Part shown: one piece after another, positions 25,547-55,414 of the stretch
Numbering within the stretch: position 1 is the first letter of the stretch
How the letters are laid out: every line of letters begins with the position of its first letter
NCBI RefSeq assembly: GCF_006345805.1
Contig: NC_042997.1
Location: 206,212,001-206,276,000, forward strand
Source: Octopus sinensis
Taxonomy: Eukaryota
Length of the DNA: 64,000 nt
Direction: 5' to 3'
Translations under genes and position numbers: made by a program
Notes under the pieces: model-generated
Seen by the model: the letters and a program-made list of their open reading frames with translations, nothing else
The model's database searches: none
What the model was told of the DNA's origin: nothing

Positions 25547-25756
25547 CATACCTTAGGTTTTGTTTTCTCTTCATTTTAAATTTCCTCCCTTCGTGTTGAA
25601 AACACATTTTCTTAATATCATATTTTATTTTCTTCAAATTAAGGAATCTTTTTCCCAGTGAGTATGCTTTCTCAAGCATGGCATTTTCTTTGTCACTAAA
25701 CATTCTTATGTTTTCTGGATTATTTTCATCAAAGTAAGACCATTGTGCAATGTCTT
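25547..25756 (-). CDS. PARP14: PARP14/15-like WWE-domain exon, 5' end lost in the assembly gap
   Basis: Open frame from the gap edge: DIAQWSYFDENNPENIRMFSDKENAMLEKAYSLGKRFLNLKKIKYDIKKMCFQHEGRKFKMKRKQNLRY. W-x-Y...F...N..LE.AY fits the WWE pattern. Donor G|gtacgt gives phase 1, matching the 12267 acceptor. Confidence 0.85.
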
Positions 25757-25856
25757 NNNNNNNNNNNNNNNNNNNNNNNNNNNNNNNNNNNNNNNNNNNN
25801 NNNNNNNNNNNNNNNNNNNNNNNNNNNNNNNNNNNNNNNNNNNNNNNNNNNNNNNN
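25757..25856. other. Assembly gap (100 N, likely a placeholder of unknown size)
   Basis: Run of exactly 100 N that cuts the WWE exon on one side and an RTE on the other. Confidence 0.99.
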
Positions 25857-28915: not shown

Positions 28916-29539
28916 TTAAAGAAGGCAAGTAATAAAGGACGTTACCGTATACATTTTTACAAACCAAGGATTTGATATAGACCTCCTTGACTCAAGTTAG
29001 GGAAGGGGTGCGAGTTATACACAAGGTTTCATTTTTCAGAGGTACAGCCCCCTAAAAATCCCCTGCGTATTATACTGAAGGGTGGGCTATACACGAGGAT
29101 TTACGGTACATAGTGTGTGACTGACTGAGAGAGAGAGAGAGAGAGAGAGGGAGAGGTGTGTTGCAAGAGAGAGGATGTGTTTGACAGAGAGAAAGGGGGA
29201 GAGAGTGATAACGTAAATTTTTTTCCGAGAAAAACTAAATAAAAAAAAAAGGAAAATTTACTCATTCAGTCTCTCTCTCTCTCTCTCACACACACACAGC
29301 AACAGAAACCTGTCTGTCTGTCTGTCTCTTCGTCAATCATTCACACACTAAAAAAAGCATCGAGAAAACATAAATAAAATGTACGCTGTCACAAACACAC
29401 ACTTTGTTCCTCCTCCCCCATACGTTCATGTCTATTTCCTCTCCCTTTCACTTTTTGCTGACTTCAAAGAAAATGTCCATTTCCACCCATAAAATAAATA
29501 AATATAATTTTTTTTTTACGGAAATTAACGAACGCAGGA

Positions 29540-29875: not shown

Positions 29876-30734
29876 GCTGTACCTTAATAACTAATTGATT
29901 TTTGGGCGATCTTTCGTCTCTAGTAGACCTTTCCGTCGATTTCCGTGAAAAACTTCTTTTTTTTTTTACATATGGGCTTGCGAGAACTTTTGAAGTAATG
30001 AGAGCGAAAGAGACTAAGAGAAAGCGATTGTATGACGAGGGAAGTTCTTTTGAAGTTACCGTGCATGTGAAGCATTTATGTATATGTGTGTGTGTGTGTG
30101 TTTGATGGGGTGTGGGAGACAGAAAGTATGTTGTGTAAGTGAAGTGCTTCTGTTAGTGTGTGTGAAAGAAGGAGGTAACTGAAATTTTTTACTCGGTGTA
30201 TGTGTATATGTATATTAAATAAAAAAAAGTTTGTCTATATCTTCGGTCACTGTCATTATTCCATTGAGTCAACCTCATTATTTTCTACATAGCAGACCGT
30301 TACATAAACAGGCAGAGGTAATCTTTCGTTTTAACTCGAAATAATGTAAACACTGAATCGGCCATACATACACACATACATACACACACACATACATGCA
30401 TACATACATATACACATACACCGAGTAAAAAAATTCAGTTATCTCTCTCTTTCACACACACTAACAGAAGCACTTCACTTACACAACATACTGTCTGTCT
30501 CCCACACCCCATCAAACATCGTTCCGAAAGATTGCCAATTAGGCGATGGTAACAGCGGAGCCGCACGCACACACCTTCGAGCTTCGAGTCAAAATGAAAG
30601 ATTGCACCTTTTTTTATTTATTTTTTTTCCTGTTACCTTAAATTTCGATGTAGTCGTAATTCTACCCCATCTGAAAAGCATTCCTGGAAAATTGCAATAG
30701 AAAAATATATACATTTTTTCTGAGAGCTAAGTGA

Positions 30735-31158
30735 AAACAACCCCCCACCCTCCATCAGACACCTACCATATTCTGAGCGCCTTGTTTCCCTGGGCATGGA
30801 TTCACTGAAGCTCCGGCGTCTGGCGACGGACTTGGTAAACACCCACAAAGTTATCAACCACCTCACCAACAACAACACTGAATACCTTTTTGATCTCCAT
30901 GTGTCTAACACACGTGGACATGCCTACAAAGTCAGAAAACAACACAGCTCCCATAACTTTCGGAAACATTTTTTCACGCTCAGAGTTGCTGAAGCATGGA
31001 ATAAACTGCCTGCGTCAGTTGTTGACTGCCATAACACTGCATCCTTTAAGGCCCTCATGCTTTCCGAAATCCGCCGAAACTACACCTGATTATATATACA
31101 CTTTAGATGAGTTGTAGTGCACCTGAGCACTGTACACAATTATTATTATTATTATTAT
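30735..31158 (+). mobile_element. CR1-clade LINE 3' end with (ATT)n tail
   Basis: LPYSERLVSLGMDSL..RR..TRGH.YK..FFTLRVAEAWNKLP; same family as 46755-48050. Confidence 0.9.
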
Positions 31159-31263
31159 AATGTACTGAATAGCATGGAAAGCCACTTTGTAAAGTATTTG
31201 TAAAGTAATTGAGAGATAGAGGAGAAAGAAATTAAATTAGGAAGATACAATGTAAAAACTTAC

Positions 31264-31400
31264 CTCGTAACAACTCTAAGCAAAACTGTAATTTGAATAT
31301 TTATTCCATGGTTTTTAGGCCGATAATTAGTTAAATAGCAGCTTTATATGACATCAATGTTTTTCCAAGAAAACTCCCCTCCGTAACCCTTCTCTCATTC
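31264..31400 (-). other. Putative non-coding first exon (5'UTR) of the minus-strand PARP gene
   Basis: Ends CAGTTTTGCTTAGAGTTGTTACGAG|gtaagt. Homologous over ~170 bp to the plus-strand unit ending at 44111. The 5' boundary is approximate. Confidence 0.55.
31363..31371. promoter_or_regulatory. GAS (STAT-type) palindrome TTCCAAGAA
   Basis: Aligns to the GAS at 44007-44015; the spacer differs while the half-sites are kept. Confidence 0.4.
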
Positions 31401-31538
31401 ATACAATTCACTCCTACGAAAAATTTGCAATAAAAGTTTATAACTTTTTACAACACACGACACGAAGGACACTTTACAAAAGAAAAAAACCGGCAATTGT
31501 TTTAACAGGAAATACAGGCGAATGTAGGTTAGAGAAAA

Positions 31539-31548
31539 TTTCACTTTC
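31539..31548. promoter_or_regulatory. IRF-type element TTTCACTTTC (GAAAGTGAAA)
   Basis: Lies about 150 bp upstream of the putative minus-strand first exon. Confidence 0.35.
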
Positions 31549-31904
31549 ATTTTTGTCGTTCACCTCGGTAAAATTTATCTGGTTCTGTTTTAAGCCACAA
31601 TCCGTCAGTGTGTGCACTCGCACGCTCACACTTTTTGGCGTGTTTTTTCTATTAACCTTCACACACGTACGTATATACATATTTTTTTAACTTTCTATAT
31701 ATACCCTTTTATTCTCTTAATTGTCTCAGGCATTTGACTGTGGCCATGCTGGAGCACCGCCTTTGTCGAGAAAATCGACCCCAGGGATTATTCTTTGTAA
31801 GCCTACTATTCGATTGGTTTCTTTTGCCGAACCGCTGCATACAGGACGTAAGCACACCAACATCGTTTGTGAAGCTATGGAGGGAGGACAAACACAGACA
31901 CACA

Positions 31905-31946
<42 letters not shown>

Positions 31947-32519
31947 AAGAATTCACAAAACAAAAACAAAAGACGAAGACAGGTGGTGTAGATAACAAAC
32001 AGTTGTATTAGTATAACAAATATATACGTGTATATATATATCAACAATCGAGGAACGGCCATAATAGGCCATTCACCCACTAGAAATAACAGCCAAAGCT
32101 TCAACCGCAAAATAACATTAATTCCGCAAACCAGGAGAAAATTAAAAAACATTTACCCTGTAATTTCTTATACGATGCACCGTTTCATCTACTGTTTAAT
32201 GGTAAACTAACCTGATTAAATTAAATCAAGCCAATCTTCCATAGGCCCTTAGATTCGTCAGTAAGAAATAGCCAGATCGGAACAGATATTTTCACGAGGC
32301 ATTTCTGTCCCTGCCTCGGCAATATCTGACCTAAAATTTTCAAATCATCGCACTCGCCGCCAAATTTATCGGCAGCAAATAAATATAAGCCGCCGATTCC
32401 ATTACGGAATCAACCAGAAAATTCATAATTAATCAATATAGGGTGGCAAAAAATTTTGTAGAATTTTTTTGCCACCAGCGTGTATATATATATATATATA
32501 TAGTATAACAAATATATAC

Positions 32520-32566
<47 letters not shown>

Positions 32567-32839
32567 TATATATATATATATAATATATATATATACGTAT
32601 GTGTGTGTGTGCATATATATATATGTATAAGGCGAGCTGGCGGGCGAAATGCGTAGCCATATTTCGTCTGCCATTACATTCTGGGTTCAAATTCCGTCGA
32701 GGTCGACTTTGCCTTTCAGCCTTTCGGGGTCGATAAATTAAGTATCAGTTACGTACTGGGGTCGATGTAATCGACTTAATCCCTTTGTCTGTCCTTGTTT
32801 AGCCCCTTGTGGGTAGTAAAGAAATATATATATATCATC

Positions 32840-33320
32840 ATCATCATTAACGTCCGCTTTCCATGCTAGCATGGGTTGGACGGTTCAACTGGGGTCTGGG
32901 AAGCCAGAAGGCTGCACCAGGCCAGTCAGATCTGGCAGTGTTTCTACAGCTGGATGCCCTTCCTAACGCCAACCACTCCGAGAGTGTAGTGGGTGGTTTT
33001 ATGTGCCACTGACACAGGTGCCAGACGAGGCTGGCGAACGGCCACGCTCGGATGGTGTTTTTTATGTGCCACCAACACAGGTGCCAGACGAGGTTGGCGA
33101 ACGGCCTCGCTCGGATGGTGTTTTTATGTGCCACCGACACAGGTGCCAGACGAGGCTGGCGAACGGCCACGATTGGATGGTGTTTGTTACGTGCCCACAG
33201 CACGGAGGCCAGTCGATGCAGTACTGGCTACGGCCACATTCGGATGGTTTTCTTATGTGCCACCGGCACCACAAAGATACAAATTCCATTGATGTTCATC
33301 GATTTTGATTTGGTTTGATT
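32840..33320 (-). mobile_element. RTE family A 3'UTR with an expanded ~62-bp repeat array
   Basis: (CAT)n, then aacgtccgctttccatgctagc, then ~5 repeat units. Confidence 0.85.
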
Positions 33321-34284
33321 TTCATATATATATATATAGCTTGCTTACCAACCACATGGTTCCGGGATCAGTCCCACTGCATGGCATCTTGGGCAAGTGT
33401 CTTCAACTATAGCCTCGGGCCGACCAAAGTGAATTTGGTAGACGGAAACTGAAAGAAGCCTGTCGTATATATGTATATATGTATCTGTGTGTCTGTGTTT
33501 GTCCCTCCACCATCGCTTGACAACTGATGTTGGTGTGTTCACGTACCTGTAACTTAGTGGTTTGGCAAAAGAGACCAATAGAATAAGTACTGGGGTCAAT
33601 TTGTTTGACTAAAGGTGGTGCTTCAGCATGGCCACAGTCAAATGACTGAAATATAGAAAAAAAAGAAAGTAAAAGAATATATATACGACAGGCTTCTCTC
33701 AGTTTCCATCAACCAAATCCACTCACAAGGCTTTGGTCAGCCTGAGGCTATATAATAGAAGACACTTGCCCAAGGTGCCATGCAGTGGGACTGAACCCAG
33801 AACCATGTGGTTGGTAATTTAGATCTGTTTTTCACATCAAGTCACCATTTTAGATGATCTGTTTGTATCATGGTTGTGGAGCCATCTAAATATGACTCTA
33901 TTCAGAAGGACGTAATATCCTTTGATAGGAACACAGTAAAAAGAATACATAAAACAAATCTGTAACTTTAAATGCCTTTAATGTTGGCAACACGTATATA
34001 TGCAAGCTGAATGATAAATGCAAATGGTTTGATACATAGGGGCCACGATCTGCCTCCTGTGCATTGCCTCCTGTGTGCTAGTCGCTATGTGTTGTGACAG
34101 AGAGCCAACTAGTTTATATCTTTATGGTCTGATGTCTTGATAAGAAAAGAGAAAGTTGCAAGGCCTCATGTCAGAATCTCACTGCTGCTTGCGCCATCTA
34201 GCTGAGCTTGTTTTAACCTGCTGTCGAGGGAGGTAACTGTGCCTACAGTAAGCAAGCTGCTTACCATAAAGACACTCCTGCACC

Positions 34285-34315
<31 letters not shown>

Positions 34316-34551
34316 TAATAAATATTAGGGAATAAATCCAAATTTACAGGGAAAAATCAGATTTAGGATTGAATCCAATTTTATAGTAAAATATTATATA
34401 ATATTAATTAGAGACAAAACCACTATTTTGCAAATCAAACAAAGAAAGACTTAATCCAATACATAAAAAATTTTTTATGTATTGGATTAAGTCTTTCTTT
34501 GTTGATTTGCAAAATAGTGGTTTTGTCTCTAATTAATATATATATATATCT

Positions 34552-34583
<32 letters not shown>

Positions 34584-34601
34584 ATATATATATATATATA
34601 T

Positions 34602-37600
34602 ACATGGTTGGATCGTCGGCGACTAAACTGACAACCCCACCAGGCTCGCTTGGTGAGGAGGGTGCTGTTGGACACACTGTGGGATGAAAAATAAGACCCA
34701 TCAAAGCGCAGATGAACTCCTGAACAGTCAACAGCCATCCAACAAGATGCCGGCCTGCCCGCCCAGCCAGTGGGATGGCGTCATCTTATGGCTAAAACAG
34801 CACAAAGAATGAAGAGAAAAGAAAAAGGGCCTCAGTACCCTGCATGTCAATTGGGCCACTCCATGACTGTGGAGTGCAACCCAAGCGACAAGAGGCTGCT
34901 AAGAATCACAGGTTCCCAAGGGCCGTCATGGAACAGGACTAACCTTGCCATATGCATTTACAACTGCAGGTCCGTGGCAGGGTGGCAAGAACTGAACCAC
35001 CTAATGGAGGAGAGGAAGAAGATCAGGTGCAACGTGTTAGGGCTGTGAAAGACATTTTGGAAGAAGGAAGCGAGTATACGATGGCAAGATGGAAGCACTG
35101 TGAGATTAGGGAGAGCAGAAGGTACTAGATCGGTCGGAGGTATCGGATTCATCATAAGTAGAGAATGGGCTTCGGGGGTCGCTTCTTGCCAGTTCATATC
35201 ATCACGGATTGGTGTACTGAATCTGAACTTTTCAGGGAAGGCCACCCTCAAGATTGTTCAGACCTATGCTTCCACAAGTACCAGCGACGACGACAAGGTG
35301 GAAGAATTCTATCGACAGCTAGACAAAGGGCTGGCTGTGAAGTCCACTTACACTGTTGTGATGGGAGACTTCAACGCAAAGGTTGGACATGGACAACAAG
35401 GGGAGGAGTACGTCAAGAGATTCGGCATAGGAGAGAGAAACAAGAGGGGAGAACATTTTGCTACCATGGCAGAGGCGAGGCGGCTCTACATCGGAAACAG
35501 CCTATTCAAGAAGAGGGAGAAGAGATGGACCTGGATATCGCCGAACTCTAAGCACTGAAGTGAGATCAACTACATCCTGGTTGATAAGCGATGCATATTA
35601 CATGACGTCTCCGTCGTGACGCCATTCAACACTGGCAGTGATCATCGTCTGGTGAGGGCGAGGGTCATCATAAACAGGAAGAGGGAGAAGATGGCGCTGT
35701 ATTTGGCGTCGAAGGGAAAACTTGTCCGAGTCTACAACGAGGTAAAGCTGCAGGAAAACTGGTGCCAAGGAGATGACATAGACGATGACTACAACTCACT
35801 GATAGGGAAACTGAATGAGTGTTTCAGGAAGGCTAAAGGAGTATGTCTAAGAGAGAAGAAGGGAAGAATCTTGGAAGAAACTACGAAGTTACTTGAGAAG
35901 AGGAAACATGAAGAGGACTATTGATGATCACCTTGAATATTCCCTTCTCAGCAGAGTGATTCGTCAGCAACTAAAGAAAGACTTTGAGGTATACCAGATA
36001 GAGAAGCTCTTGAAGGCCGCAGAGGAAAAGAAGAGCCTCAAGAAATGCAAGAGGAACATGGTACTATATAGATCGGAAGTGATGGCCCTGAAAAATACAG
36101 ATGGAATACCAGTCAACGATAAGAGTGAGATGGAAAATGTTTGCGAAGACTTCTACATCAAGCTCTTTAAGTCTACCAGAAATGTCCAGCCATTACCACC
36201 ACTCCAACAGGAAGAAAATGTGCCACCTATCCTTGTCAGTGAGGCTGAAAGAGCTATCGGCTTGATGAAAAATGGAAAGGCGCCAGGGAAAGACGGTATA
36301 ACATCGGAGGTGATAAAGTCAGGCAGAGAGCAGCTCTGGAAAATCCTCGCTGAGCGATTGACGCACTATCTAGATGAAGGAAGAACTCCCTCGCAGTGGA
36401 AAGAGTCAAATACCATCCTGCTGTATAAGAAGGGCGACAGAGAAGATCTAAAGAACTACCGACCCATTTGCCTGCTGTCTCACGTGTACAAGCTGTTCAC
36501 AAAGGTAATTCTGAACAGGTTGTCACGTCATCTCGAGACAAACAACAACCGAGGGAGCAAGCCAGCTTCCAGAAGAACCACAGCACAATGGACCATATAT
36601 TTACTCTAACACAACTGCTTGAGTGAGCGAATGAGTACAAGCTGCCTCTTTGCGTTGCATTTGTAGACTATGAGAAGGCCTTCGACAGTGTCGAAACCAA
36701 TGCAGTGCTGAACTCACTGCAGAGGCAAGGAGTTGAGGTGCAATATGTGCAACTGCTCAGGGAAGCAAATTCCGGATGCACCACCAACATAGCTCTGCTG
36801 TCATCACCCGTAAAAGTGCTGGTCGAGAAGGGAGTGAAGCAAGGAGATACAATCTCCCCAAAACTTTTCACCGCATGTCTCAAGCTGATCATCAGAGGCA
36901 TCGACTGGCAAGGTGGTGTCAACATCAATGGCGAGCTCCTCACCCACCTCTGTTTCGCTGATGACATCGTACTCATCGTTGAAACCATGGATCAGCTTCA
37001 GACCATGCTGACGGAGCTCGACATCAAAAGTTTTGCAGTAGGTCTCCAGATGAACCGCATGAAAATGAAGTTCATGCGGCCAGACAACGTACTGACAGGT
37101 CAAATGGTGATCGGCAGTGATGAAATAGAGGAGGTGAGGGAATATGTCTACCTGGGACAGGAAGTAAATATGTGCCGGGATATCAAAAAGGAGATCTCAC
37201 GGAGAGTAAGGGCTGGATGGAAGGCGTTCAATGGCATAAGGGATGTGCTGAAGGGAAGGTTGGACAGGACCACCCATGCCAACCTCATCAACAGCACAGT
37301 TTTTCCTGCAATGTTATATGGTAGTGAAACATGGGCTACCACAAAGAGAGAAGAGCAGAGACTGGTAACGGCTAAAAGAGCCATGGAAAGGGCAATGCTT
37401 GGAATCTCATTGAGAGAGCACATCAGTAGCGAGGTCATCAGAAAGAAGTCCAGCATGAGGGATGTCATAGCAGAGTATACATGCAGCAAGTTTAGATGGG
37501 CTGGACACGTTGCCCGGCTCACCGATAATCAGTGGACCCGCGCAGTTGTCGAGTGGTATCCGCGCGAGCGGAAACGACCACCCGGAAGGCCTTCACAACA

Positions 37601-37729
37601 GTGGAGTTACGATTTCAGGAGGACAATTGGGATCATGTGGATGAGAAAGGCACGATCTAGAGAGGAGTGGACAGCGTGCTGTGACCAGCAGTGTCAAATA
37701 GACGCCTGACGGACTGGTCGGTCAAGGTG

Positions 37730-37731
<2 letters not shown>
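34602..37731 (+). mobile_element. Near full-length RTE-clade LINE (family B) within a (TA)n tract
   Basis: 5'UTR, APE (VVMGDFNAKVG), RT (NYRPICLL, VDYEKAFDSV, GVKQGD, FADDI); a few stops/frameshifts; (TA)n on both sides. Confidence 0.93.
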
Positions 37732-37768
<37 letters not shown>

Positions 37769-37869
37769 ATATATATATATATATATATAAGATATATATA
37801 TATATATATAAAGATATATATATATATAAAGATATATAGATATATATACACGCACACACACACGCATAT

Positions 37870-40800
37870 ATATAACGAGGTCATTGCCAGTGCCGCTGGA
37901 CTGGCTCCTATGTAGGTGGCACATAAATACACCATTTGAGCATGGCTGTTGCCACTACCGCCTGACTGGTCCTTGTGCCGGTGGCATGTAAAAGCACCCA
38001 CTACACTCTCGAAGTGGTTGGTGTTAGGAAGGGCATCCAGCTGTAGAAACTCTGCCAGATCAGACTGGAGCCGGGATGCAGGGTCGCTCTTGAATACAAA
38101 GACCCTCCTGGGTGAAGAGTGTATCCCTCAGCATAGGCTAATCATTAGTGACTTTAGGCTTGAGGCCAGAAGGACTCCAAAAAGCAGACCAATCCAGAAA
38201 AGAAGGATTTGAAAGCTAAAGAACCCTTCACATGGTCAGAGATTTAGGGACATCCTCATCAAGAAATTTGATGAGAGGGAGGAGGAGCTACAGACGTTGG
38301 ACATAGAAGGTAGCTGGAAATTCCTACAGCACAGCTTGCTGAGTGCCACATACCAAGTCTGTGGATGGTGCAAAGTCCCTTCCAGACCTAGAGTTACGTG
38401 GTGGTGGAATAGTGCAGTAGACAAAGCCATTAGTGCAAAGAAACAGGCCTGGAGAGCCTGGAGGTAGCAGGGAACCGTACCAAGTAGCCAAAATGGAGGC
38501 CGGGCGGCAGGTATACATAGCCAAAGATATAGCGTTAGGAAGGGCATCCAGCTGTAGAAACATTGCCAGATTAGACTGGAGCCTGGTGCAGCCTTCTGGC
38601 TTCCCAGAACCCCGGTCGAACCGTCCAACCCATGCTAGCATGGAGAACGGACGTTAAACGACGATGATGATGATGATGATAGCAGAAAAGAAGAAATTTG
38701 CCAATGTCCAGCGACGTGAGGACCAAAGAACTGAGGTATTTCAGATTGCTAGACAGTGTGTGAGAGAAAATAGTGATGTTACAGGAGAGAAATGTGTCCG
38801 CCTGGATGATGGGGCACTTGCTTTTAATGTTGGTGAAAAGAAAGAGGCTTGGAGAAGCCATTATGAAAGACTGCTGAATGTGGAGAATGAATGGGAGGAG
38901 GAGAGCCTGCCAAATGTTGACCCAGTAGAGGGACCAGCTATCCAAATAGACAGCTCCCTTGTAGTTAAGGCAATTAAGGGTATGAAACCAGGTAAAGCCC
39001 CCGGCCCATCAGGTATCACTGCTAAGATGCTTAAAACAGCTGGTTATGTGGGCTATGGCCTAGTCACCCGCATTGTAAACCAGGTAGTTCATAATGGAGT
39101 CATACCCAATGACTGGCATAGCAGCACCATAGTCTACTGCTACAAGGGTAAGGGTGATGCTCTAGATAGAAATAACTACAGGGGTATTAAACTGTTGGAT
39201 CAGGTGATGAAGGTCACAGAGAGGGTCATAACCCATCTCATTAGGGAGAGAATTTGCTTAGATGAGATGCAGTTCGGTTTTGTAGAAGCACCACTGATGC
39301 TATATTCCTGGTCCGACAACTGCAGGAGAAGTACCTAGCTAAAGATAAACCCCTCTAAATAGCTTTTGTGGACTTGGAGAAAGCCTTTGACAGAGTTCCC
39401 CGATCCCTTATCTGGTGGTCGATGCGGAAACTGGAGATTGACGAATGGCTAATAAGGGCTGTACAGGCTCTATACAGAGAGGCTGTCAGCAAGGTTAGGA
39501 TTGGCAACGAATATAGTGAAGAATTCCAGGTAGAAGTAGGTGTACACCAAGGCTCAGCCCTCAGTCCCCTTTTATTCATCATAGTCCTCCAGGCAATAAC
39601 AGAGGAATTCAAAACAGGTTGCCCCTGGGAGCTCCTCTATGCCGATGACCTGGCTCTCATAGCAGAATCACTACCGGAACTAGAAAAGAAATTTTGGGTG
39701 TGGAAACAAGGGTTAGAATCAAAGGGCCTTAGAGTAAATGTAGCGAAGACCAAAGTTATAGTAAGCAGAAAGGCGAACTCAGCACACACCCCATCGGGCA
39801 GGTGGCCATGCTCGATCTGTAGGAAAGGTGTAGGTAGAAACTCCATAAAATGCACCCAGTGTAAGCTATGGACGCATAAGAGGTGCAGCAACATCAAAGG
39901 GAAATTAACTGATAAGATAGCTTTCATGTGCGGCAGATGTACAGGGACAATAGACACCACAAATACTCAGAAAATAGATTCCATCACACTCCAGGGGGAG
40001 AAACTAGAAGTAGTTGATAGTTTCTGCTACCTGGGTGACCAAGTTAGTAGTGGAGGTGGATGCTCAGAGAGTGTCACCATTAGAATACGAATAGCCTGGG
40101 CAAAGTTTACAAAGCTCCTACCCCTACTGGGGACAAAGGGTCTCTCACTCAGAGTGAAAGGTAGATTGTATGATGCATGTATGCGAACTGCCATGCTTCA
40201 CGGCAGTGAAACATGGGCCATGACTGCTGAGGACATACGTAGACTTGAAAGAAATGAAGCTAGCATGATCCGCTGAATGTGTAATGTCAGTGTGAATGCA
40301 CAACAGTGTGTAAGCACCCTGAGAGAAATGCTGGATATAAGAAACATCAGATGCGGTGTGCAAGAGTGACGCTTGCGATGGTATGGTCATGCACTGCGGA
40401 TGGATGAGGAGAGATGTGTGAAGAAGTGCCGCTCCTAAACAGTTGAAGGAATCAGGGGGAGAGGTAGACCCAGGAAGACATGGGATGAGGTAGTCAAGCA
40501 TGACCTCAGAGCGTCGGGCCTCACTGAGGCAATGGTCAAGGACCGAGATCTCTGGAGATGTGCTGTGACTACAAAGACCTGGGATGCTTCCGGCTCCAGT
40601 TCCGCATAGCCCCTGCCCATTCAAAATACCTTGGATCCTGGAACGTCTCGCTGTGCTTGAGGAGACCTGTTGAGTCAAGTGCATGTACACGAACATCTAA
40701 ACAAATATCAATGGAAATAGTAGTTGTGATACCTGTGTCGGTGGCACGTTAAAAGCACCATCCAAACGTGGCCGATGCCAGCGCCGCCTTGGCTGGCTTC

Positions 40801-40987
40801 AGTGCTGGTGGCACATTAAAAGCGCCAACCGATCGTGGCCGATGTCAGACCCCCCTGGCACCTGTGCAGGTGGCACATAAAAAGCACCCACTACACTCGC
40901 GGAGTGGTTGGCGTTAGGAAGGGCATCCAGCTATAGAAACACTGCCAGATCAGAGTGGAGCCTGGTGTAGCCCTGGCTTCCCAGACC
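37870..40987 (+). mobile_element. Composite RTE family A block; last copy lacks its terminal ~60 bp
   Basis: 302-aa RT segment at 39368-40276; 3'UTR stops at ccagacc, abutting the macrodomain exon. Confidence 0.88.
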
Positions 40988-41181
40988 ACAAAGTAAACAT
41001 GTTTGATCTGGCTTGAATTTTGATCTGAGTAGTTTTTCACTGCTTCATACATTGTTCTGGGTAGTTTTTCAATGGGGTACTTCATTTCAGCCCCTAATAT
41101 AGGAAATGCAAGGCTTTTTGCTCCCATTCTCTCAGCTTCTTCCAGACAAATGGTTATTATTTGAGTCAAGTTTGCCAGAAT
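40984..41181 (-). CDS. Macrodomain C-terminal exon (PARP14/15-like), 3' end replaced by RTE 3'UTR
   Basis: ttttttattag|ATT (phase 0). ILANLTQIITICLEEAERMGAKSLAFPILGAEMKYPIEKLPRTMYEAVKNYSDQNSSQIKHVYFVV, SLAFP-type macro motif. No consensus donor; the frame runs into repeat sequence to TAG at 40891-40893. Confidence 0.85.
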
Positions 41182-41792
41182 CTAATAAAAAATAATTGTT
41201 TAGTAATTGATAATGAACATTTTATTAAATTATTTTCTTATTACAGGAAGAAACCATTAAGTTGTAATAAATATATCCTCCTCTCACAACTCCTCTCACT
41301 CCTACCACTTCTAAACACAACTGTCATTCCTATCACTCTTTAGTCCTGCAAGGGACAAGGCAACCTCACTCATGATGCTGCTACAATAAAACAGACCCAA
41401 TCCACCATGTAAAATGGTTGGTGAATGAAGAGAGACAATGCAGACCCAAGAGGAGTCTTTAGTGTTGTTGAGGACATGACAACCTCTCTAGTGCTCGTGC
41501 CATGACAGAGAAAAACTCACCAATACAGACAGTAAAACAGAGAAATATGTTTTAATATAGTCTTATTTATCAGTCACATAACTGTTGTTAGGCCATGAGG
41601 CTTTTTTCCTTCTATTTATATATAAAAGTGTCCTGTTCATCGATATCTTCTGCTTCCTTCCAATGATAACTTGGAAGAACAAATATTAAACAGGATGCTG
41701 TCATTTGCTTTATGATTCTCACACAACATGCATAAGGTTCTCTTCAAACATTAACTGTTTCAATAAGTCAATATAATATGATTGATACTTAC

Positions 41793-42025
41793 TGAATCAG
41801 AGGAATTTTCATCCCAGGGAGGTAATGCCAGATGAAATACATTCTTACAGTTGAGGTTATATCCTTTAGTGACTGCAATTTCAGATGTAGAAATACCTTG
41901 AGGATATTTCTGGTTACATTCATCTTGTATCTCTGAACCAGCAGCAAAGAGAATATATTTGGAGATAGAACCATCATTAAGCTGGAGTTCTGGACCAGAA
42001 ATGGATGAGCTTGATGTTGTGGTTT
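41793..42025 (-). CDS. Macrodomain exon (PARP14/15-like)
   Basis: ttttcag|AA ... TCA|gtaagt; 233 nt, phase 1 to 0. TTTSSSSISGPELQLNDGSISKYILFAAGSEIQDECNQKYPQGISTSEIAVTKGYNLNCKNVFHLALPPWDENSSDS; joins the 41181 exon in frame. Confidence 0.88.
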
Positions 42026-42065
42026 CTGAAAATAAACAAATATCAGTGTGTGTATGTGTATAGAT

Positions 42066-42120
<55 letters not shown>

Positions 42121-43968
42121 AACATCATCATTACCCCCCATGATGATATAACGTCCATATTCCATCCAGGTCCAAGTTGAACAAAATGATATATAAAGAC
42201 ACATCCGTCACAGCAAAAGTCATGTCCAAAAACTGGTATTTATATTCCTGTCCATGGTGGGCTCTACGCCCACATTTGCCCCTGTGAAGCAGTTCCTTTA
42301 CCATATCTCATCTTCCTAACACCCATCCCTCCATTACTCTTCTAACTACGGTCCTACTTTGCTGCTGTAACCATTAGAGAGCAGAATCTGCACATATTCA
42401 TCACCACCCCCGCCCTTTTCTAACCCCCACCCTAATCCTAACCCTAACCCCAACTACAAAAATTTTTGGAAAATTGTTTCAGAATCATAATCTCTGTATT
42501 TTTCCACATATTTTGAAAAAAAAAAAATTCTGAAAAAAATGAAGAATTTAGCAAGGGGAAGTAATTTCAAAATGCTGATTTATGCCAATTTTTTTGGCAC
42601 ATTCGTATTTTCCATCGCTGAAAACGCTGGAACTGGAGGTGTCTTGTGTGGTCAGTGGTCAGACCTTAAAAAGTCTGGAACCGAATAACATCAAGTTGAG
42701 GAAAAGTTAGGTTTGTAGGCTCAGCTGAAGTAGAAAAACAGGCTGTCACACGTGACCTTATTTGAAGGCTGTGATTTGTTGGGTTGTATATTGGTGCATG
42801 CTAGAGTAAGAGACAAATTGCACCAATAGCAACCAATCAGAGTAGTGGATACAACAGGGTCCAAAATGCAGCCAAAGACTAGCTGTTATCTACTATGTTT
42901 GTATGTATATATAATAGAGAGGAGAGGAATTTCACTCAAGTGTACGCTGCACCTCTATAATTTAAAAAATATTTTTCTGGAAAAAAATGAAATAACTCTA
43001 ACAATTCAGTTTGGGCAGGTGTATTATTGTGCTAATGTCAGAGTAACCAGTGAACATCGAAGGATTAACGTCAAGAAGGAAGGAATATTATTTATATATA
43101 TTTATTTGTTTGCCTGACAGGTAATTAGAGGACAGAAAAATTGCTGTCTGCTAGTAGAGAGGGAAAGAATAAGAAATGCACGGTGCCGGATAAAGGTGGT
43201 TCTGTTCCGATTGGCTATTTCCAAATGAGTTCATTAGTGGGGTCTGGAACTCTGGTGGGGAAAAAAAGTTTTATGCCCCAGACCTCTCATGGTTTAAATC
43301 TGATCTTGTCTGTGCGCGTCTACTACAGAGATACAGGGTAATAGAATGTAGATAGATAGAAAGGGTAAGGTTTGTGTTATTGTGCCTGATACACCATACT
43401 TGAAATGAGAAAAAGAGAGGCCCTTTGGATAAGTGCCCACTGACCAAAGAGAAGGAAACCTGATTTGATTGAATATACATGTATATTAATCCTAACCAAA
43501 TTATGTTAAACTATACAAAAGATTTTTACTCTGTATCATGTTTTGACTCCTGAATGCCTCGAAAAGGTCTGAGAGGTTACTATACTCTCACCAATTTCCT
43601 AGTGGAACAGGGGAGAACAATAGGTAGAGGACTTGTAGGAAAATGTAGATTCAGCTTCGAATTCTAGCTTAGAAAGTTGGTAGGTATCTACCACATATGT
43701 ATATGTATGTGTGTATATATATGTGCGTGCGTATGTGTATCCACAATCTAAAGGTTTTGTGAAAACTATGCTGAACAGTACCACCAATAGAAAAAAAACA
43801 AACTGATAAATTCTACCAAGGTGATTGACAAGACTGAAGGTGAAATCTTCTCTAGCCTACTACATTCACCTGTATTTCCTAATTAAACTATTACTGGTTT
43901 TTCTCTGCTTTTAAAGTTTTACTTTTCAAAATAAACTCTTATCGCAAATTTCTCAGAAACGTAAATTG

Positions 43969-44015
43969 TATAAAAGAGAGTGAAGTTGTGGTGGTGGGAA
44001 GAGTTTTTCTCGGAA
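43969..44015 (+). promoter_or_regulatory. TATA box and GAS (STAT-type) palindrome TTCTCGGAA
   Basis: TATAAAA 43969-43975; TTCTCGGAA 44007-44015. TTCNNNGAA is kept in the paralogous copy. Confidence 0.45.
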
Positions 44016-44111
44016 AAACTGGTGACATACAAAGTTGTTTAACCAATCGACGACTTACAAAAGCCATCGAATTAATATCAAAGTTTCAGTTTTGCTCAGA
44101 GTTGTTGCTAG
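44000..44111 (+). other. Putative non-coding first exon of a plus-strand gene (probable paralogue)
   Basis: TATAAAA at 43969-43975; ends CAGTTTTGCTCAGAGTTGTTGCTAG|gtaagt. Inverted homologue of 31264-31433. Confidence 0.55.
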
Positions 44112-45150
44112 GTAAGTTTTCACTTCCTCCATCTCTCCATTGCTTTACAAATTCTTTACAGAGTCGCATTCAATATTTTTCACTCCGTTATAACTACACA
44201 AATTTGTCTTCTTGTAACTCTCAGGACGTATACATATATATATATACACGAGTGAGTGGACAAACGAAAGAGGGGCACTCAATCATATTATTGGGAATAA
44301 CACGTGCGTGTGTGATAAAGAGGCCCGAAAATCTGATGATCATGTGTTGGTTGAAGTTATCAGACGTAACTGATAATGATAATGATGATTCTTGCAGAGT
44401 ATGTCTTCTTGTTGAAAAGTGTGTAACCCAAAATACGAAGTTTCAAACAACATGATTCATTTTCGTTACATTTACAATTATAAATCAACCACGTCGTATC
44501 GTTGAAGATCAACATATAATTTTAACTGTTGTGCATTTGTTGACAATCTACTTTAGTCTTTTGGAATTACTAGTGAGGGAAAGGGTGTGTGTGACAGATA
44601 TGATAGAAAGGGCAATCTGTAAATGTGGTAGGCATGATAATTAGATTAATTAATATCGGTGTAAAACAAACGACCGGGGAAGAAAGGAGAGATGCTTACA
44701 ATAGTTTTCGTTTGAGTCACTGACATCGTTTCTCGTTCAACCCCAAAACTGTCTGCAATCTTTCAATGAAAGATATCCATATTCCTAAAAGTTATGAGGA
44801 AAAAAGTGGTAACGTGTAAATCTTTCGAAACCCCTCCCCCTTGGGAAAATTCTTTCCAATAAATACCTATTTACTCGGAATCTACAGCATATAAGCGGTA
44901 TTTGTTGGAAATTTTGTTAAAATACATCCATATTTCTAGAAGTTAGGAGACGGGTAGGGCACAAATCTGTAGTTAGGCCATCATAAATACGCATACATAC
45001 ATAAATATACGTATTATGCTTTCACGATTCGCTTCTGTTTATGTGCATGTATGGGTGGATGGTTGGGTGGGTTTGCACCAAGGGTTCTATGTGTAAGCTG
45101 AAGAACAAAGTGAAGAAATGAGAATGTTTAACGGAACTTACCGAACAAGT

Positions 45151-45163: not shown

Positions 45164-46754
45164 TGAAAACATCTCTGAAGGATTGCCGTAAAGTTTGAAA
45201 TGGTCTTTTTTTTTTTTCGTAGTGAAATCAGAATAATTTATAATCGAAAAGGTGGAAGTTATTTATCCATAATTCTCAAATTAGTTTCCTATTAATTGAG
45301 GCCGCGGATCTTTTCGGTTTGAACGGCAGTTTTTAACATAATTTCTAGGTAACTAAAAAATTTTAAACTTCGTATACTGGTAGAATGTGTTTATAAAACA
45401 TCTTTTTCTCTTGGCTTTGTGGTGAAAATTCTATGGTTTGTAAGATATTTGTTTTTTTTTTTCAATTCTTTCAATTTCAACCAATCAATGACGTCTATTG
45501 AGGTAAAAAAAACACACATTCTGTGCCGTATGAATATATCTCTCGTTTAAGAAACAGATTGGGTTTATTTACATATTTGAAGAAAAAAAGATACCCTTCC
45601 CCCCACCCCTAACCCTAAAACAGATTGAAATGCAATAGATCGATACTAGGGTCATAATTATGGGTGACAATTTCATATGACACCGCTAGTAAAAACCGAA
45701 AAGATCTGAGGCCGCTTTAGTTAAAGGTTACTCTATAATGTTTGCAGGTCAATGCATTTCTACGTTACGTCATTTTCTTTTGACAGCCATTCATTCTCTC
45801 AGTTTTCTTTCTTTCCCTTTATCTTTTTGGGGTGGGGCTGTAATTTGACAAACGGTTTTTTTTTAATGTTTTCTCTCTCTCTCTGTTCTATTTATACCTT
45901 TCTTTCCTGCATTCTGTCTCTCTCTTCCTCGTTCTTCTGGTTTGCTAAGTGTGTTCCTTCTCCAAACTTTATTTCCTTGTAACTTTCCGAGAAATGCATA
46001 TTTTGTAATGAAATTTTCTTCAAATTTCTTTCAGAATGTGTAGATTACAACTATATAGCGGTTTACCAAGTTTTTCTTGTGTAGTATAGCGAATATTTTC
46101 TGGTTGGTTTGTTTACTGATAGTGTAAGGCTACTTTATTATGTTTCCTATTTGGAAATAGATAAATATATTTAGCTTTTTTAAGTTGGGATATATAATGA
46201 TAAAACCGTCACTTATAACTTAAGTCTTATCGGATCTTTTTACTTTGACCGGCAGATTTTAAAAATAATTTCTTTGTAACTAAACACTTTTAAACTTCGT
46301 ATACTGGTAGAATGTGTCGCAAAAAACATCTTTTTCTCTTGGCTTTCTTAAGAAAATTCTGTATTTTGTAAGCTATTTCTTGTATTTCGGCAATTTCAAC
46401 CAATCAATGACGTCTATTGAGGTGAATTTTTTTTCTTCAGAAATGTAAATAAGCTGCAAATATAAACATTTTGTGGCCATAAAATGAGGGGTCACTCGTA
46501 AAAAGAGCTGGATAACAAAACCGTTCACTCATTAAGTGTCCACCCATAATTATGATCCTAGTATCGATCTCGAAATAGACATAATTATGGGTGGACACTA
46601 AATGAGGGAACGGTTTTGTTATCCAGCTCTGTTTACGACTGACCCCTCTGTTTATGGCTACAAAATGTTTATATTTGCAGCTTATTTACATTTCTGAAGT
46701 AAAATAAAAGATACCCTTCCCCCCACCCCTGACCCTAACCCTAACCCCACATAT

Positions 46755-48050
46755 AATAATAATAATAATAAAACATTGTGTACGGTGCTCAGGTGCACCA
46801 CAACTCATCTAAAGTGTATGTATAGTACATAGGGCAATGTACAAGCGTCAGGAAAAGAACAGTGCATGAGTCATGACATACACATGTGTATGAGTATGGA
46901 AGGGGGACAATCAGGTGTAGTTTCGGCGGATTTCGGAAAGCATGAGGGCCTTAAAGGATGCAGCATCATGGCAGTCAACAACTGACGCAGGCAGTTTATT
47001 CCATGCTTCAGCAACTCTGAGCGTGAAAAAATGTTTCCGAAAGTCATGGGAGCTGTGCTGTTTTCTGACTTTGTAGGCATGTCCACGTGTGTTGGACACA
47101 TGGAGATCAAAAAGGTGTTCAGTGTTGTTGTTGGTGAGGTGGTTGATAACTTTGTGGGTGTTTACCAAGTCCATCGCCAGACGCCAGATCTTCAGTGAAT
47201 CCATGCCCAGGGAAACAAGGCGCCCAGAGTATGGTAGGTGTCTGATGGAGGGTATGCGTTTGGTTGCACGTCTCTGAACAGATTCCAGGAGGTCAATGTT
47301 CTGAGCAAGATAGGGGTTCCAAACTGATGTTGTGAATTCCAAGTGTGGTCGTACCATAGCTGTATACAGTTTTAAATAGATGGCTGGAGAGCGGCTAACA
47401 AAAGTCTTGCTGAGTGATGCCAAGACACCCTCGGCCTTCTTGACAATTTTAAAGATACGCTTTGTCCAACACAAATCACTGCTGACAGTGATGCCTAGGT
47501 AACGCTCACAAGAGGATTTCTTGATATCAGTGTTGTGGAGGGAGTATGTGGACGCAGGGTTTTTTCTCCCAAAATGCATGGTGGTACACTTGTCCACAGC
47601 CAGTTTCAATTGCCAGTCTGTGATCCATTGCTGCATTGTGTCCAGGTCTTATTGCAGGAAAGAGCTGTAGACAAGAGGATCTGTCCTCTTGATTTCAAGG
47701 TACAGCTTGATGTCATCTGCATATTTTAATACTGTGGAATTCTTTAAATTTGCATCTATGTCATTAATGTATGCCACAAACAAGAAGGGACCAAGAACAG
47801 ATCCCTGTGGTACACCCGATGACATCTCATATGGTGTAGAATGCTGTCCTAGAACTGTGACTACCTCCTTTCGGCTGAGAATGAAGGATTTCAACCAGTT
47901 AAAAAGATCATCCCTCACACCCATTGCAGAGAGTTTCACCATAAGCCTTTTGTGTGGCACAGAATTAAAAGCCTTAGCAAAGTCAAGGTAGACAACATCC
48001 ACCCATGAGCCTCTGTCAGTGATCTGAGTAATGTCCTCAATATATAAAAA
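46755..48050 (-). mobile_element. CR1-clade LINE, 5'-truncated
   Basis: VVYLDFAKAF, GVPQGSVLGP, KYADDIKL, VRPHLEF; (TTA)n tail. Confidence 0.92.
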
Positions 48051-50687
48051 AATTAAAATTTTACGGCAAGTGACGATCTTCTTCAAATCTGAACAAATAC
48101 ACGTACCACTGGAAGTTGTTCTTGAACTTGTTGCAAGCAACAGCAGTAATTGTATTCACCTCAATAGATAAATATATTTAGCTTTTTAAGGAGGGATATA
48201 TAATGATAAAACCGTCACTTATAAGTGTTATCATTATAAGTAAATCCTAACTCCAGCTACATAAACGCCATAGCAAGAAATATATTTTCTGAAAGGCTAA
48301 CAAACATTCTATGCGTGCATGTATGTTAAATATTAATTACTTCGTGTTCTTTTAACTGCTATAAAAAAAAAATACAGTTTCATAATTATAGAAATACATT
48401 CATTATTAAGTTGAAGAATGTGAAGAAAGAGAAAATAATTTCTACATTATTTTATTATATACATATAGCATTTTTAATATTTATAAACATTTTGAAACAT
48501 AGTAATTTTGTTGTAGAGAATTACGACCTAATATTTTAGCTATCTAATTCCTCATTCTAGCTATTATAAATCTCAACAATTCAAACAAGTCTTGTTAGAT
48601 TTTTCATGGACATGGCATAAAAAATAACCAATGTCTCAAAGGAATGAGTGTCGTGGAGTTTAGTTACATCCAACCAACACTGAAGTTTTTCCCAAAATCC
48701 AGGGTTTTTATAACTGCTCAACTTGACTTTAAAGAATCGAAATCGCATACAAATATTCTTAGAATTCCTGTATAAGCAGTTATATTAACCAATGGAAAAA
48801 CATATTTCTTCGGCAATATGACATTACATCATATTGCCAGCTACCACAAATTGGTGCTACTATTTGAAAATGGCTACACGCTACAACTATATCAGAATTT
48901 GAAAAAATATATGGTAGGCACACATGTATAAATGGGGGTAGGTTGGAAAGTTAGTAACCAGGGCAAAATGAGTAACTTCTGATTTCTCATTATTTTCTTC
49001 CTCCCTGTGTGAAATCCCTTACTTTGTAAGCATTGCATCACCATTTTGTATTGCTACATTATACTTGAGGATAAAAACTGGTTGTTGCTGTTGAAGTTGT
49101 GGAAGTACAAAGCATAGTCAAGGGGCAGGTCCCCTTTTTTTTTTGTCAAGAAATTTCTCTTCAACTGTGACCCAATTGTAATTGAGGTTGCTAATAAAAT
49201 ATCTGGATAATTTTTCATGCTAAACAATATTGATTTCTCTGCTGGATTCCAAGTCAATTTTTCCCCACACTAATGTCTAATTTGATAATCTTCAAGTTTC
49301 CCAAAAGTTACAACGAGTAATGACTAATTTCAGTAATTTCTTCTCTTTAACTGCATGGTGGGTAAATGTATCACGAACAGAACATTCCAGCAGATCGTGA
49401 AGAAGAAGAAGAATATTTTATGTTGGGTTTTCTTATATTTAGTCTAATTTCATTAATTTCATATCCTGTGCCATTTTTTCCCTGATCCTCTTTCATTTGA
49501 TTTAGATTTTAAATGTTATTCTTTTGGCATGTCTGAATGTTTCTGATGTTTTCGGATGGATATTAATGTGTACGAGTCTGTTTTCTGAAGAACTGAAGCA
49601 GCACATAGTACCTTGTCTTACTCATTTTGTGGCAGCCTTTCATTTTCCAAATGAAATACAATTGGTGAAATTGAAACCAGAACTTTTGGCATTGTACAAC
49701 AGAAAGAACACCGATTTTTCCGTAAGTTGTAAGATAGTTGTATTTACAAAACATGTAAAACATCTGAATGAGGTTTATCAAGTGTATGCACAGGAAAATA
49801 AGTTGTCTAAATCTAATTTTAATGTAAATGTTTGTCTTTAATAATATGTTGCCTTTTAGAGTTTCATTACGAGAGAGAGGGGGGGAGGGGGAGAGACACT
49901 GTGTGTGTGTGTGTGTGTTGTAAGTTGGTTGATCAAAGCAGTAAGAGAGAATGTCTATTCATGTTATATGCACAAAGATTGGTAAAACAACCTCAAGCAC
50001 AGTCAACTTACTCCTAATTAAATTCAACTTTGAAGATTCTTTATGTAAAGCATTGGTAAGGCATCAAAGAATGGCTTGTTGAGAATTTGCTGAGCCTTGT
50101 TGATTGGCCAGTTGTAATCCAAAAGTTGCACATTAATCTGTTAAAAAACGAAACGAAAAAAGCAGCAGATTTTGGTTTCTTTGCTTTCCACATTTTAGCA
50201 GGAGTCACGGTGACTGGCATTGTGACAGGAGTACCACAACCCCAACGAAGCTATTGACCAATCACCATTGCCGTATTATGTGGTTCAAGACCAAGGTGTT
50301 GTGGGCAGAAAACACACTGGGAAAAGACTGTCCAACTACTGCACATCTTTCTCTGAACCTACTGCACACATATGCAGACTTCACTTGCTGATGGTAGACA
50401 CACTGCAGACTCACTTGCATTTTGAGCAAAATCATACAGAGCCCTTTGTCTTCACATTCCATGACAATACCTCTTACCAGCTTAAAAACTGGACAGTGTT
50501 TTTGCTTGCTGTCAACCATTGTCAACTGGTAAACATTTTGATCTTATAAACACAGGCATTTGTGCATTCATTTTCTATCACACGTTTGGCTAACACGTTA
50601 TTCAGATGACTTTGTTAAATGTGAAAATATCTTTTGTACATTCTCACAAACACATGTAAACCTTATTACCTTGCACAATGTGGTCAA

Positions 50688-50912
50688 TTAACCTTTTAGC
50701 GTTTAAACTGGCCATATCTGGCCCAAACATATAACATGTTTTATATTTAAACTGGAAAGATCCAGCCCCTAGAACACCTGCCCTACAATGTCATGCTAAA
50801 AAAATAATCACGTTATCACAATGTTTAAGCTATGAGATAATGGCATCGATTCAAAACAATGTGAATAGACAAGCATTGCATTTGGCTGAGGAATCTGAAT
50901 GGTAAAGGGGGG
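50688..50912. mobile_element. Degenerate piggyBac-type MITE
   Basis: ttaa-ccttttagc ... ggtaaaggg termini. Confidence 0.45.
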
Positions 50913-51072
50913 AGATGGATTCCGGTCTGAGTCCTGCCCAGTTGTTCTGATCTCTCTCTTAACTGTAATTATATGAGAGAGAAAGAGAGAGAGAGAGAAT
51001 TTACTTTGACAACAAATGATGTATTTAATACCTTAACGATGTTTTTCCTAATTATTTTCTTTTCATTTCCAG

Positions 51073-51107
51073 AGCAAAAATACCCGTTGAAATCATGGCG
51101 GAGAAAG
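51073..51107 (+). CDS. Putative start-codon micro-exon (ATG 51095; MAEK, phase-1 donor)
   Basis: Long pyrimidine tract, then tttcatttccag|AGCAAAAATACCCGTTGAAATC ATG GCG GAG AAA G|gtattt. Good Kozak context (A at -3, G at +4). The product cannot be identified from four residues. Confidence 0.5.
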
Positions 51108-51463: not shown

Positions 51464-51494
<31 letters not shown>

Positions 51495-51529
51495 CATCAT
51501 CATCATCATCATTTATATATATAGAAAAT

Positions 51530-51935: not shown

Positions 51936-51957
51936 TTATATATATATATGTGTGTGT

Positions 51958-51994
<37 letters not shown>

Positions 51995-52001
<7 letters not shown>

Positions 52002-53240: not shown

Positions 53241-53249
53241 TGAAAATAT

Positions 53250-55410: not shown

Positions 55411-55414
55411 TATC

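Follow-up and report, generated by a model that had tools for sequence, protein, structure and literature searches.

Two head-to-head copies of a likely 5' module of PARP14-like genes in Octopus sinensis

A stretch of 64,000 nucleotides from the Octopus sinensis chromosome CM016859.1 (positions 206,212,001-206,276,000, in the orientation of the record; referred to below as the window) carries two homologous units in opposite orientation at a locus of PARP14-like genes. The two units are likely diverged paralogous 5' modules of the octopus PARP14-like family and would form the starts of one gene on the plus strand and one on the minus strand, the use of their promoters and splice donors being predicted from the layout. 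This reading is carried by the homology, copy number and orientation of the units, by their association with the 5' ends of paralogues and by the exon structures around them, all of which were observed directly. The module would consist of a proximal promoter (Box 1, TATA box and the motif TTCNNNGAA near the start), a non-coding exon 1 of ~105 nt, an AG/GTAAGT donor and ~80 nt of intron 1. The plus unit would probably start a gene that has the MAEK exon, 7 kb downstream, as its second exon. The minus unit would be the likely start, or former start, of the gene of XP_029633941.1, which has WWE-like and ADP-ribosyltransferase (ART) exons and no macro domain. Between the units, the macro exons would be what remains of another partial duplication, truncated at both ends and lacking a promoter. 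A literature search returned no paper on octopus PARP14-like genes or on their promoters.

The window has 40% G+C, is rich in microsatellites and retrotransposons and contains one 100-N gap. Its positions 1-35703 agree with the O. sinensis locus fetched for XP_029633941.1 (L006) without a mismatch over 35,703 bases. It was compared with other octopus PARP14-like loci, among them L001, the locus of XP_029635758.1 (P0168) on the same chromosome, 0.8 Mb from the window and in inverted orientation, and L003, the O. vulgaris locus of the P0001 gene (OX597814.1:7.99-8.09 Mb). Gene ranges of paralogues are ranges of coding sequence (CDS) only.

Two homologous units in opposite orientation

The two units were delimited as follows:

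31155-31591, minus strand: minus unit, the same module as the plus unit in opposite orientation, recognised by alignment with the plus unit and by its motifs
43793-44193, plus strand: plus unit, comprising an upstream conserved block, a core-promoter-like region, a putative non-coding exon 1 and the start of intron 1; it aligns with the minus unit and with L001:7455-7751

An earlier note on this DNA had described two paralogous first-exon units which share ~170 bp. Both units were recovered where it had placed them, with 31264 (minus) and 44111 (plus) as the last exon bases and AG/GTAAGT at both borders, and the shared stretch proved to be real and longer than proposed. In blastn, the minus strand from 31591 to 31155 aligned with 43793-44193 at 68.6% identity over 449 columns (E 6e-45). 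The score of this pair was 175 bits, compared with at most 27 bits in 100 shuffles. Beyond the 170 bp, the homology covers an upstream block of ~100 bp (79% identical) and ~80 bp of the intron. A MAFFT alignment of the two units recovered all landmarks described earlier, together with the ~100-bp upstream block and ~80 nt of conserved intron.

The units match no transposable element (TE) in the window, as the earlier note had stated; no repeat match and no other copy were found there, and 43793-44193/31591-31155 is the sole such pair within the window. The 15-mer TTTTCTNGGAAAAAC gave three matches in the window at up to one mismatch, where 0.07 were expected. The third of these (29219-29233) was rejected as a unit, as it lies in low-complexity surroundings without unit homology. 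An Rfam search for a structured RNA or small-RNA gene in the unit gave microsatellite artefacts only. The units are arranged head-to-head, with their inner ends (31591 and 43793) 12,201 bp apart, within one gap-free stretch (25857-64000).

A third copy and the copy number of the unit

A third copy of the unit was found at L001:7406-7730, in sense orientation and 13.6 kb upstream of the MAEK exon of L001. Because this copy precedes the start-codon exon of L001 in sense, the units were assigned to the 5' ends of PARP14-like genes. The three pairwise identities are 74-75% over 360 shared columns. The ~100-bp upstream block is confined to the two window copies, and the minus copy and the L001 copy share a 27-nt intron stretch which has been lost from the plus copy. 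An identity of ~75% at aligned positions, equal across three copies, would agree with an old duplication. Thus, from the proposal of an ancient inverted duplication of a gene 5' end, the head-to-head arrangement of true paralogues and the old divergence stand, and a step of family expansion explains the units better than a simple local inverted duplication, because the three copies are equally distant from each other.

Copies were counted by nhmmer with a profile of the unit over ~501 kb of octopus PARP14-like loci, a base which leaves out the loci of P0164, P0157, P0159, P0160 and P0004. In total three copies were found, and the profile search returned none in L002, L003, L004, L005 and L007, while true repeats occur many times per locus. 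These counts bear on the reading that the unit is a low-copy TE fragment or a dispersed repeat which lies near these genes by chance. The window is indeed very rich in TEs, and young fragments of long interspersed nuclear elements (LINEs) adjoin both of its copies. However, with only three copies in this sequence the unit is not a dispersed repeat; all copies lie at PARP14-like loci, two of them in sense upstream of MAEK exons, and the unit has no coding capacity and no Rfam match (terminal repeats were not searched for). This reading is therefore extremely unlikely.

Anatomy of the unit

The landmarks of the unit in the two window copies are:

43836-43845 (plus) and 31548-31539 (minus): IRF-type motif GAA(A/G)GTGAAA, as GAAGGTGAAA and GAAAGTGAAA, in the two window copies only
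43939-43948 (plus) and 31433-31424 (minus): Box 1, TTATYRCAAA, as TTATCGCAAA and TTATTGCAAA, in all three copies
43967-43978 (plus) and 31405-31394 (minus): TATA region, as TGTATAAAAGAG and, degenerate, TGTATGAATGAG; intact in the plus copy and in L001
44005-44019 (plus) and 31373-31359 (minus): TTCNNNGAA block, as TTTTCTCGGAAAAAC and TTTTCTTGGAAAAAC, in all three copies
44005-44111, plus strand: putative non-coding exon 1 of the plus gene, its 5' end placed from the position of the TATA box; donor at 44111/44112
31264-31372, minus strand: putative non-coding exon 1 of the minus gene, with a predicted 5' end; donor AG/GT at 31264/31263
44132-44152 (plus) and 31216-31196 (minus): conserved intron block TCTCTCMATTRCTTTACAAAT, in all three copies

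The TTCNNNGAA block (TTTTCTNGGAAAAAC) follows the TATA box by 26-35 nt, and its central base alone differs between the copies. The three copies read TTCTCGGAA, TTCTTGGAA and TTCTGGGAA, so that the STAT-type TTCNNNGAA motif is kept in all three with a variable central base. Motifs of the types found in gamma-activated sites (GAS) and interferon-stimulated response elements (ISRE), namely TTCNNNGAA for STAT and GAAANNGAAA for IRF, are thus present as candidate elements. As to the GAS site proposed in the earlier note, the conserved TTCNNNGAA motif is there and nothing beyond the motif was seen; it lies about at the expected transcription start, which would be an unusual position for a GAS element.

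A non-coding stretch of about 90 nt is common to all three copies; in the plus copy, the stretch taken as exon 1 contains no ATG. Its end is formed by the donor block TTTTGCTYAGAGTTGTTRCKAG/GTAAGTTTT (the slash marks the splice border), which is invariant at 28 of 31 positions across the three copies and corresponds to L006:4419-4449 in the minus exon. The conservation density of this block (TTTTGCTYAGAGTTGTTRCKAGGTAAGTTTT) was matched in only 1 of 5000 column shuffles. Conservation is also clustered along the unit as a whole, since none of 5000 shuffles had so few runs, a result to which indels contribute. All three copies have the consensus donor AG/GTAAGT, a perfect one that falls inside the best-conserved block of the unit; two of the three (plus and L001) have a TATA box. 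Taken together, the layout fits a TATA-type promoter followed by a non-coding first exon of ~105 nt. The function is deduced from this layout, and transcription start, donor use and any STAT/IRF-type regulation of the units are predictions.

The same features could belong to a conserved regulatory module or to an internal or alternative exon of the 5' untranslated region, and not to the transcription start itself. In favour of this, the TTCNNNGAA block stands at a variable distance from the TATA-like box, a CAG precedes the last 22 nt of the putative exon in all copies, and other first exons are annotated for paralogues. However, the A-rich tract before this CAG makes a poor acceptor, and TATAAAAG is invariant in two of the three copies at a promoter-like distance, which renders such a role very improbable.

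The plus unit and the MAEK exon

The earlier note had the plus copy point to the MAEK exon, and this was borne out: the unit lies 7 kb upstream of a conserved start-codon exon. The features of this arm are:

51073-51107, plus strand: MAEK exon (35 nt), with acceptor ..ttccag/AGCAAAA, ATG at 51095-51097, donor GT at 51108-51109, phase 1
49055-64000, plus strand: block of intron 1, exon 2 and intron 2 of the plus gene, 94-97% colinear with L001:19351-33034

The exon reads ..ttccag/AGCAAAAATACCCGTTGAAATCATGGCGGAGAAAG/gt (acceptor at 51072/51073), and both the exon and its flanks are also conserved in the four loci L001, L002, L004 and L007. The proteins P0157 and P0164 start with MAEK, and P0168 and P0176 read ..RAKIPVEIMAEK and ..RAKLHVEIMAEK, respectively, across this exon from alternative upstream exons. 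The MAEK exon is thus the start-codon exon of the octopus PARP14-like family. A consensus donor followed by a downstream ATG exon with its acceptor was found for the plus copy as well as for L001.

The plus arm is colinear with L001 over the unit (~69%), weak intron matches and then the block of 94-97% identity. In tblastn with octopus paralogues, no PARP or macro exons were found on the plus strand between 44 and 64 kb. Because of the colinearity with L001, whose first macro exon lies at L001:33873, the macro exons of the plus gene should begin ~0.8 kb beyond the end of the window. The L001 gene is macro-only: WWE and ART exons are absent both from the gene and from the 10 kb downstream of it. 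The units of plus gene and L001 are ~69% identical (blastn; ~75% at aligned positions), but the gene bodies from 49 kb on are ~95% identical. This contrast points to gene conversion, or to a recent duplication without the 5' end, as its probable origin.

The tract 49055-64000 and L001:19351-33034 (CM016859.1 ~205.39-205.40 Mb) represent an inverted segmental duplication or a gene-conversion tract, and the 94-97% identity stops ~5 kb downstream of the plus unit. Separately, an old segment of intron 1 is colinear in three paralogues at 67-90% identity (45192-45996, L001:10378-10811 and L002:10568-10989); it is located between the expected position of the unit and the MAEK exon, and the sequence upstream of it in L002 yielded no unit.

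The minus unit and the WWE-like/ART gene

Downstream of the minus unit, on the same strand, the following features were identified:

25757-25856, no strand: 100-N scaffold gap, between the minus unit and the WWE-like exon
25547-25756, minus strand: WWE-like exon (3' part), donor GTACGT, cut at 25756 by the gap; the ATG of the NCBI CDS is at 25703
12134-12267, minus strand: ART (PARP catalytic) exon 1, found by tblastn, with AG/GT splice sites
11272-11449, minus strand: ART exon 2, with the LWHGT motif, found by tblastn
6354-6619, minus strand: ART exon 3 with the stop codon, matched by Pfam PARP and identical (100%) to P0208

The WWE-like exon and the three ART exons have AG/GT splice sites throughout and form one open frame to the stop. 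Protein pieces of the minus strand matched Octopus PARP14-like proteins, and the 261-aa concatenation of these exons matches XP_029633941.1 (P0208, 244 aa) at 100%. The NCBI CDS of this protein spans 25703 to 6354; it starts at the first ATG past the gap because the 100-N gap cuts the WWE-like exon. A cluster mate, XP_036354925.1 (P0239, 274 aa, on an unplaced 115.9-kb scaffold), is identical and begins 30 residues earlier, with an ATG inside the same exon; it carries 13 more residues upstream of the cut point at 25756. P0208 and P0239 therefore provide the macro-less model from two assemblies. The scaffold of XP_036354925.1 could close the gap 25757-25856.

Pfam PF00644 recognised the ART domain (E 1.4e-19 for P0239, 3.4e-9 for the last exon alone). 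The best Protein Data Bank (PDB) match of the catalytic domain is human PARP14 (E 1.8e-43), and human PARP15 and PARP10 are also among its closest relatives there. Neither P0208 nor P0239 has a macro domain. The WWE part gave no Pfam hit at E <= 0.01 and, for residues 1-83, no PDB hit; in the bivalve protein P0218, however, the region with which it aligns is a Pfam-positive WWE domain. The ART exons of P0208 are 91-99% identical to those of P0001 in exons 1 and 3 and 88% in exon 2. Judged by its exons, the minus gene is apparently a recent derivative of macro-containing octopus paralogues. Missing macro, linker or WWE N-terminal exons were found nowhere in the window, even at E = 5, and the gap may hide further exons of this gene.

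L003 was considered as an ortholog that might reveal the content of the gap and was set aside, as its orthology is uncertain: colinearity is limited to the part between the WWE exon and the 3' flank, where identity is patchy (76-96%). L001 and L003 were likewise rejected as orthologs of each other. The intron between the WWE-like exon and ART exon 1 contains a minisatellite (22807-24846) of ~85 copies of the 24-bp unit TCTCTCTGTAGCTCTCTTCTCCCC; a related array occupies the same intron of the O. vulgaris paralogue (L003:81.7-83.7 kb).

How far the units act as gene starts

Several observations weigh against the units as gene starts, most of them on the minus arm. There the TATA region is degenerate (TATGAATG) and the putative exon 1 holds two short upstream open reading frames (ORFs), both of which could be signs of decay in this copy. 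No second MAEK exon was found downstream of the minus unit with blastn-short or with an nhmmer profile built from four copies, and the scaffold gap separates the unit from its coding exons. In the wider family, no unit was present within 9.9-15.5 kb upstream of the MAEK exon in the three other loci with this exon. Some annotated isoforms start in other first coding exons (L001:10001, ATGTGTAG; L002:10001; and a repeat-derived exon encoding MLNETPMF), which are partly TE-derived. Finally, other old intron segments common to the plus arm and L001 are 67-80% identical, a level which the unit (~75%) does not clearly exceed, so that this figure does not in itself demonstrate selection on the unit. 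Given the alternative first coding exons and the MAEK loci without a unit, the unit is therefore a 5' module associated with the family but not the only one.

Since the link from unit to coding exons on the minus arm crosses the gap, the distance, the missing exons and even the scaffold join are uncertain for the minus gene. The statement of the earlier note that the minus copy points to the WWE-ART exons thus holds for the orientation and for the intact gene downstream, and is weakened by the crossing of the 100-N gap, the degenerate TATA region and the lack of a MAEK exon. These same points, together with the first coding exon being cut by the gap, the two upstream ORFs and the 5.3 kb between unit and gap, which consist almost wholly of repeats, would be expected if only the plus unit works as a gene start. 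The minus unit would then be a decayed relic, and the WWE-like/ART gene would start elsewhere, possibly in the gap, or would not be properly expressed. However, consensus donor, TTCNNNGAA block and intron block are no less well preserved in the minus copy than in the others, the minus and plus copies show the same identity to L001, and the gene downstream has an intact ORF and splice sites. Decay of the minus unit is accordingly the less probable, though still appreciable, possibility, and the reading of both units as likely gene starts is preferred.

The region between the units

The two units are separated by:

31592-43792, no strand: spacer of 12.2 kb with two LINEs (~34.7-37.7 and 38.66-40.7 kb), SINE-like repeats (resembling short interspersed nuclear elements), microsatellites, the macro relic and low-copy DNA
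40985-42025, minus strand: macro-domain relic of ~1 kb, recognised by Pfam Macro and 95% identical to L001:49652-50628

About 47% of the spacer recurs at least two times elsewhere in the sequences examined, and a further 3.1 kb are LINE with reverse transcriptase (RT) ORFs. The remainder consists mostly of microsatellites and the relic; only 41988-43792 (1.8 kb, adjoining the plus unit upstream) is low-copy. Opposite starts within ~1 kb, as in a bidirectional promoter, were not found: the units lie 12,201 bp apart, and would still be several kb apart without the recognisable TEs. What is predicted is a divergent pair of genes, each with its own copy of a duplicated promoter, and not one bidirectional promoter shared by both.

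The macro exons within the spacer had been proposed to be either a separate truncated copy or part of a longer gene with an internal promoter. In tblastn, macro matches were obtained on the minus strand at ~41.99-41.75 and 41.18-40.95 kb. In the first relic exon (42025-41793), the acceptor and the initial ~40 nt of what is normally the next exon after the MAEK exon run on in frame into the second macro exon, of which the opening 33 nt are missing. The relic has therefore lost the VD(V/I)I(I/V)NSTN stretch and the greater part of the first macro exon. An intron follows, and then the third macro exon (41181-40985), which ends ~28 nt early at a SINE-like repeat; the rest of this exon was found nowhere in the window. 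The relic matches positions 10-106 of the Pfam Macro profile, positions 1-9 being absent. Upstream of the relic on its strand, neither a MAEK exon nor a unit was found; the minus unit follows downstream of the relic, an order that does not suit a single gene. Of the two alternatives, the separate truncated copy is favoured over the longer gene, the macro exons being truncated at both ends and in the wrong order. The best reading of the segment 40985-42025 is a relic left by a recent partial duplication, truncated and lacking a promoter.

Repeats and gene models near the units

Two LINE copies of the same family lie in the first introns:

30731-31159, plus strand: 5'-truncated LINE 3' end in intron 1 of the minus unit, antisense to the unit, 90-95% identical to 46752-47269
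46752-48155, minus strand: LINE in intron 1 of the plus gene, antisense to the gene, with a Pfam RVT_1 match and an RT ORF that continues to 48155

A colinear extension of the unit duplication into these segments (30731-31159 versus 46752-47269, 90-95%) was considered and rejected, as they are separate young LINE insertions, one in each first intron. The two copies are 95% identical over 361 bp, and the insertion on the minus arm starts exactly at the end of the old unit homology. The first introns of the minus and plus units also contain near-perfect inverted-repeat pairs, 30099-30213/30404-30518 (95.7%) and 46427-46554/46580-46707 (93%), respectively, which resemble hairpins of miniature inverted-repeat transposable elements.

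Several gene models of the family carry irregular 5' ends. A repeated element encoding MLNETPMF occurs around window position 61482 (61215-61817), at L004:873 and at L002:26108. In the O. sinensis model P0212 a copy of it serves as the annotated first coding exon and is joined to a MAEK-type exon; the MLNETPMF exon is a predicted TE-derived alternative 5' exon. Among the paralogues listed with the O. vulgaris locus L003 (P0001, P0151, P0004), several models begin with MKERRSEL.., which lies midway through a macro domain, so that they probably lack part of the 5' end. The first 57 residues of P0159 match window 34952-35122, where a LINE-ORF region begins, at 98% identity, which suggests that this model is chimeric with a TE.

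Significance and comparison with known systems

The arrangement described here is an ordinary outcome of segmental duplication and gene-family expansion and is modestly novel. It provides a 5' anatomy (unit, long intron, MAEK exon) for a lineage-specific expansion of octopus PARP14-like genes. RefSeq models can be corrected with this anatomy; among them are several whose start lies inside a domain, at a gap or in TE-derived exons. The conserved promoter-proximal blocks form a short set of candidates for immune inducibility. In mammals, macro-PARPs are interferon-induced and fast-evolving and evolve by partial duplication (PMC10221186), and PARP14 was among the antiviral effector genes that were differentially expressed between diet conditions in OsHV-1-exposed oysters (PMC12803857). 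For these reasons, conserved regulation in a cephalopod, if real, would interest comparative immunology; the regulatory angle of the units is speculative.

A more far-reaching view would be that an ancestral macro-PARP was split in Octopus into head-to-head macro-only and macro-less WWE-like/ART genes, each with the ancestral promoter module (with STAT-type and here IRF-type motifs). We regard this as rather improbable. If true, ADP-ribose "reader/eraser" and "writer" modules would be co-induced yet separately encoded, in an animal for which no interferon is known.

The vertebrate macro-PARP cluster contains PARP14 and its partial duplicates PARP9 and PARP15 (PMC10221186). Like this cluster, the octopus family is clustered and fast-evolving, and its partial duplications have kept varied subsets of macro, WWE and ART domains. 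Unlike it, the octopus genes represent a separate expansion in the octopus lineage over at least 6 Mb of one chromosome and include macro-only genes (P0168) and a macro-less WWE-like/ART gene; moreover, the present result concerns a duplicated non-coding 5' module and not the proteins. Macro-less WWE+ART "PARP15-like" proteins of ~290 aa exist in bivalves. The product of the minus gene (244 aa; 274 aa on the other scaffold) aligns end to end with one of these, P0218 (287 aa), at 38% identity and has the same macro-less layout, but in contrast to P0218 it shows no Pfam WWE match. Among vertebrate proteins, PARP11 has such a short WWE+ART architecture.

Human PARP9 and DTX3L are reportedly a head-to-head pair with a shared bidirectional promoter that responds to interferon-gamma. 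As in that pair, the divergent octopus pair includes a member of the macro-PARP family, and STAT/IRF-type motifs are invoked. While PARP9 and DTX3L, two unrelated genes, share one short promoter, the octopus pair would have two duplicated promoters, 12.2 kb apart and separated by TEs and a gene relic, which belong to paralogous genes.

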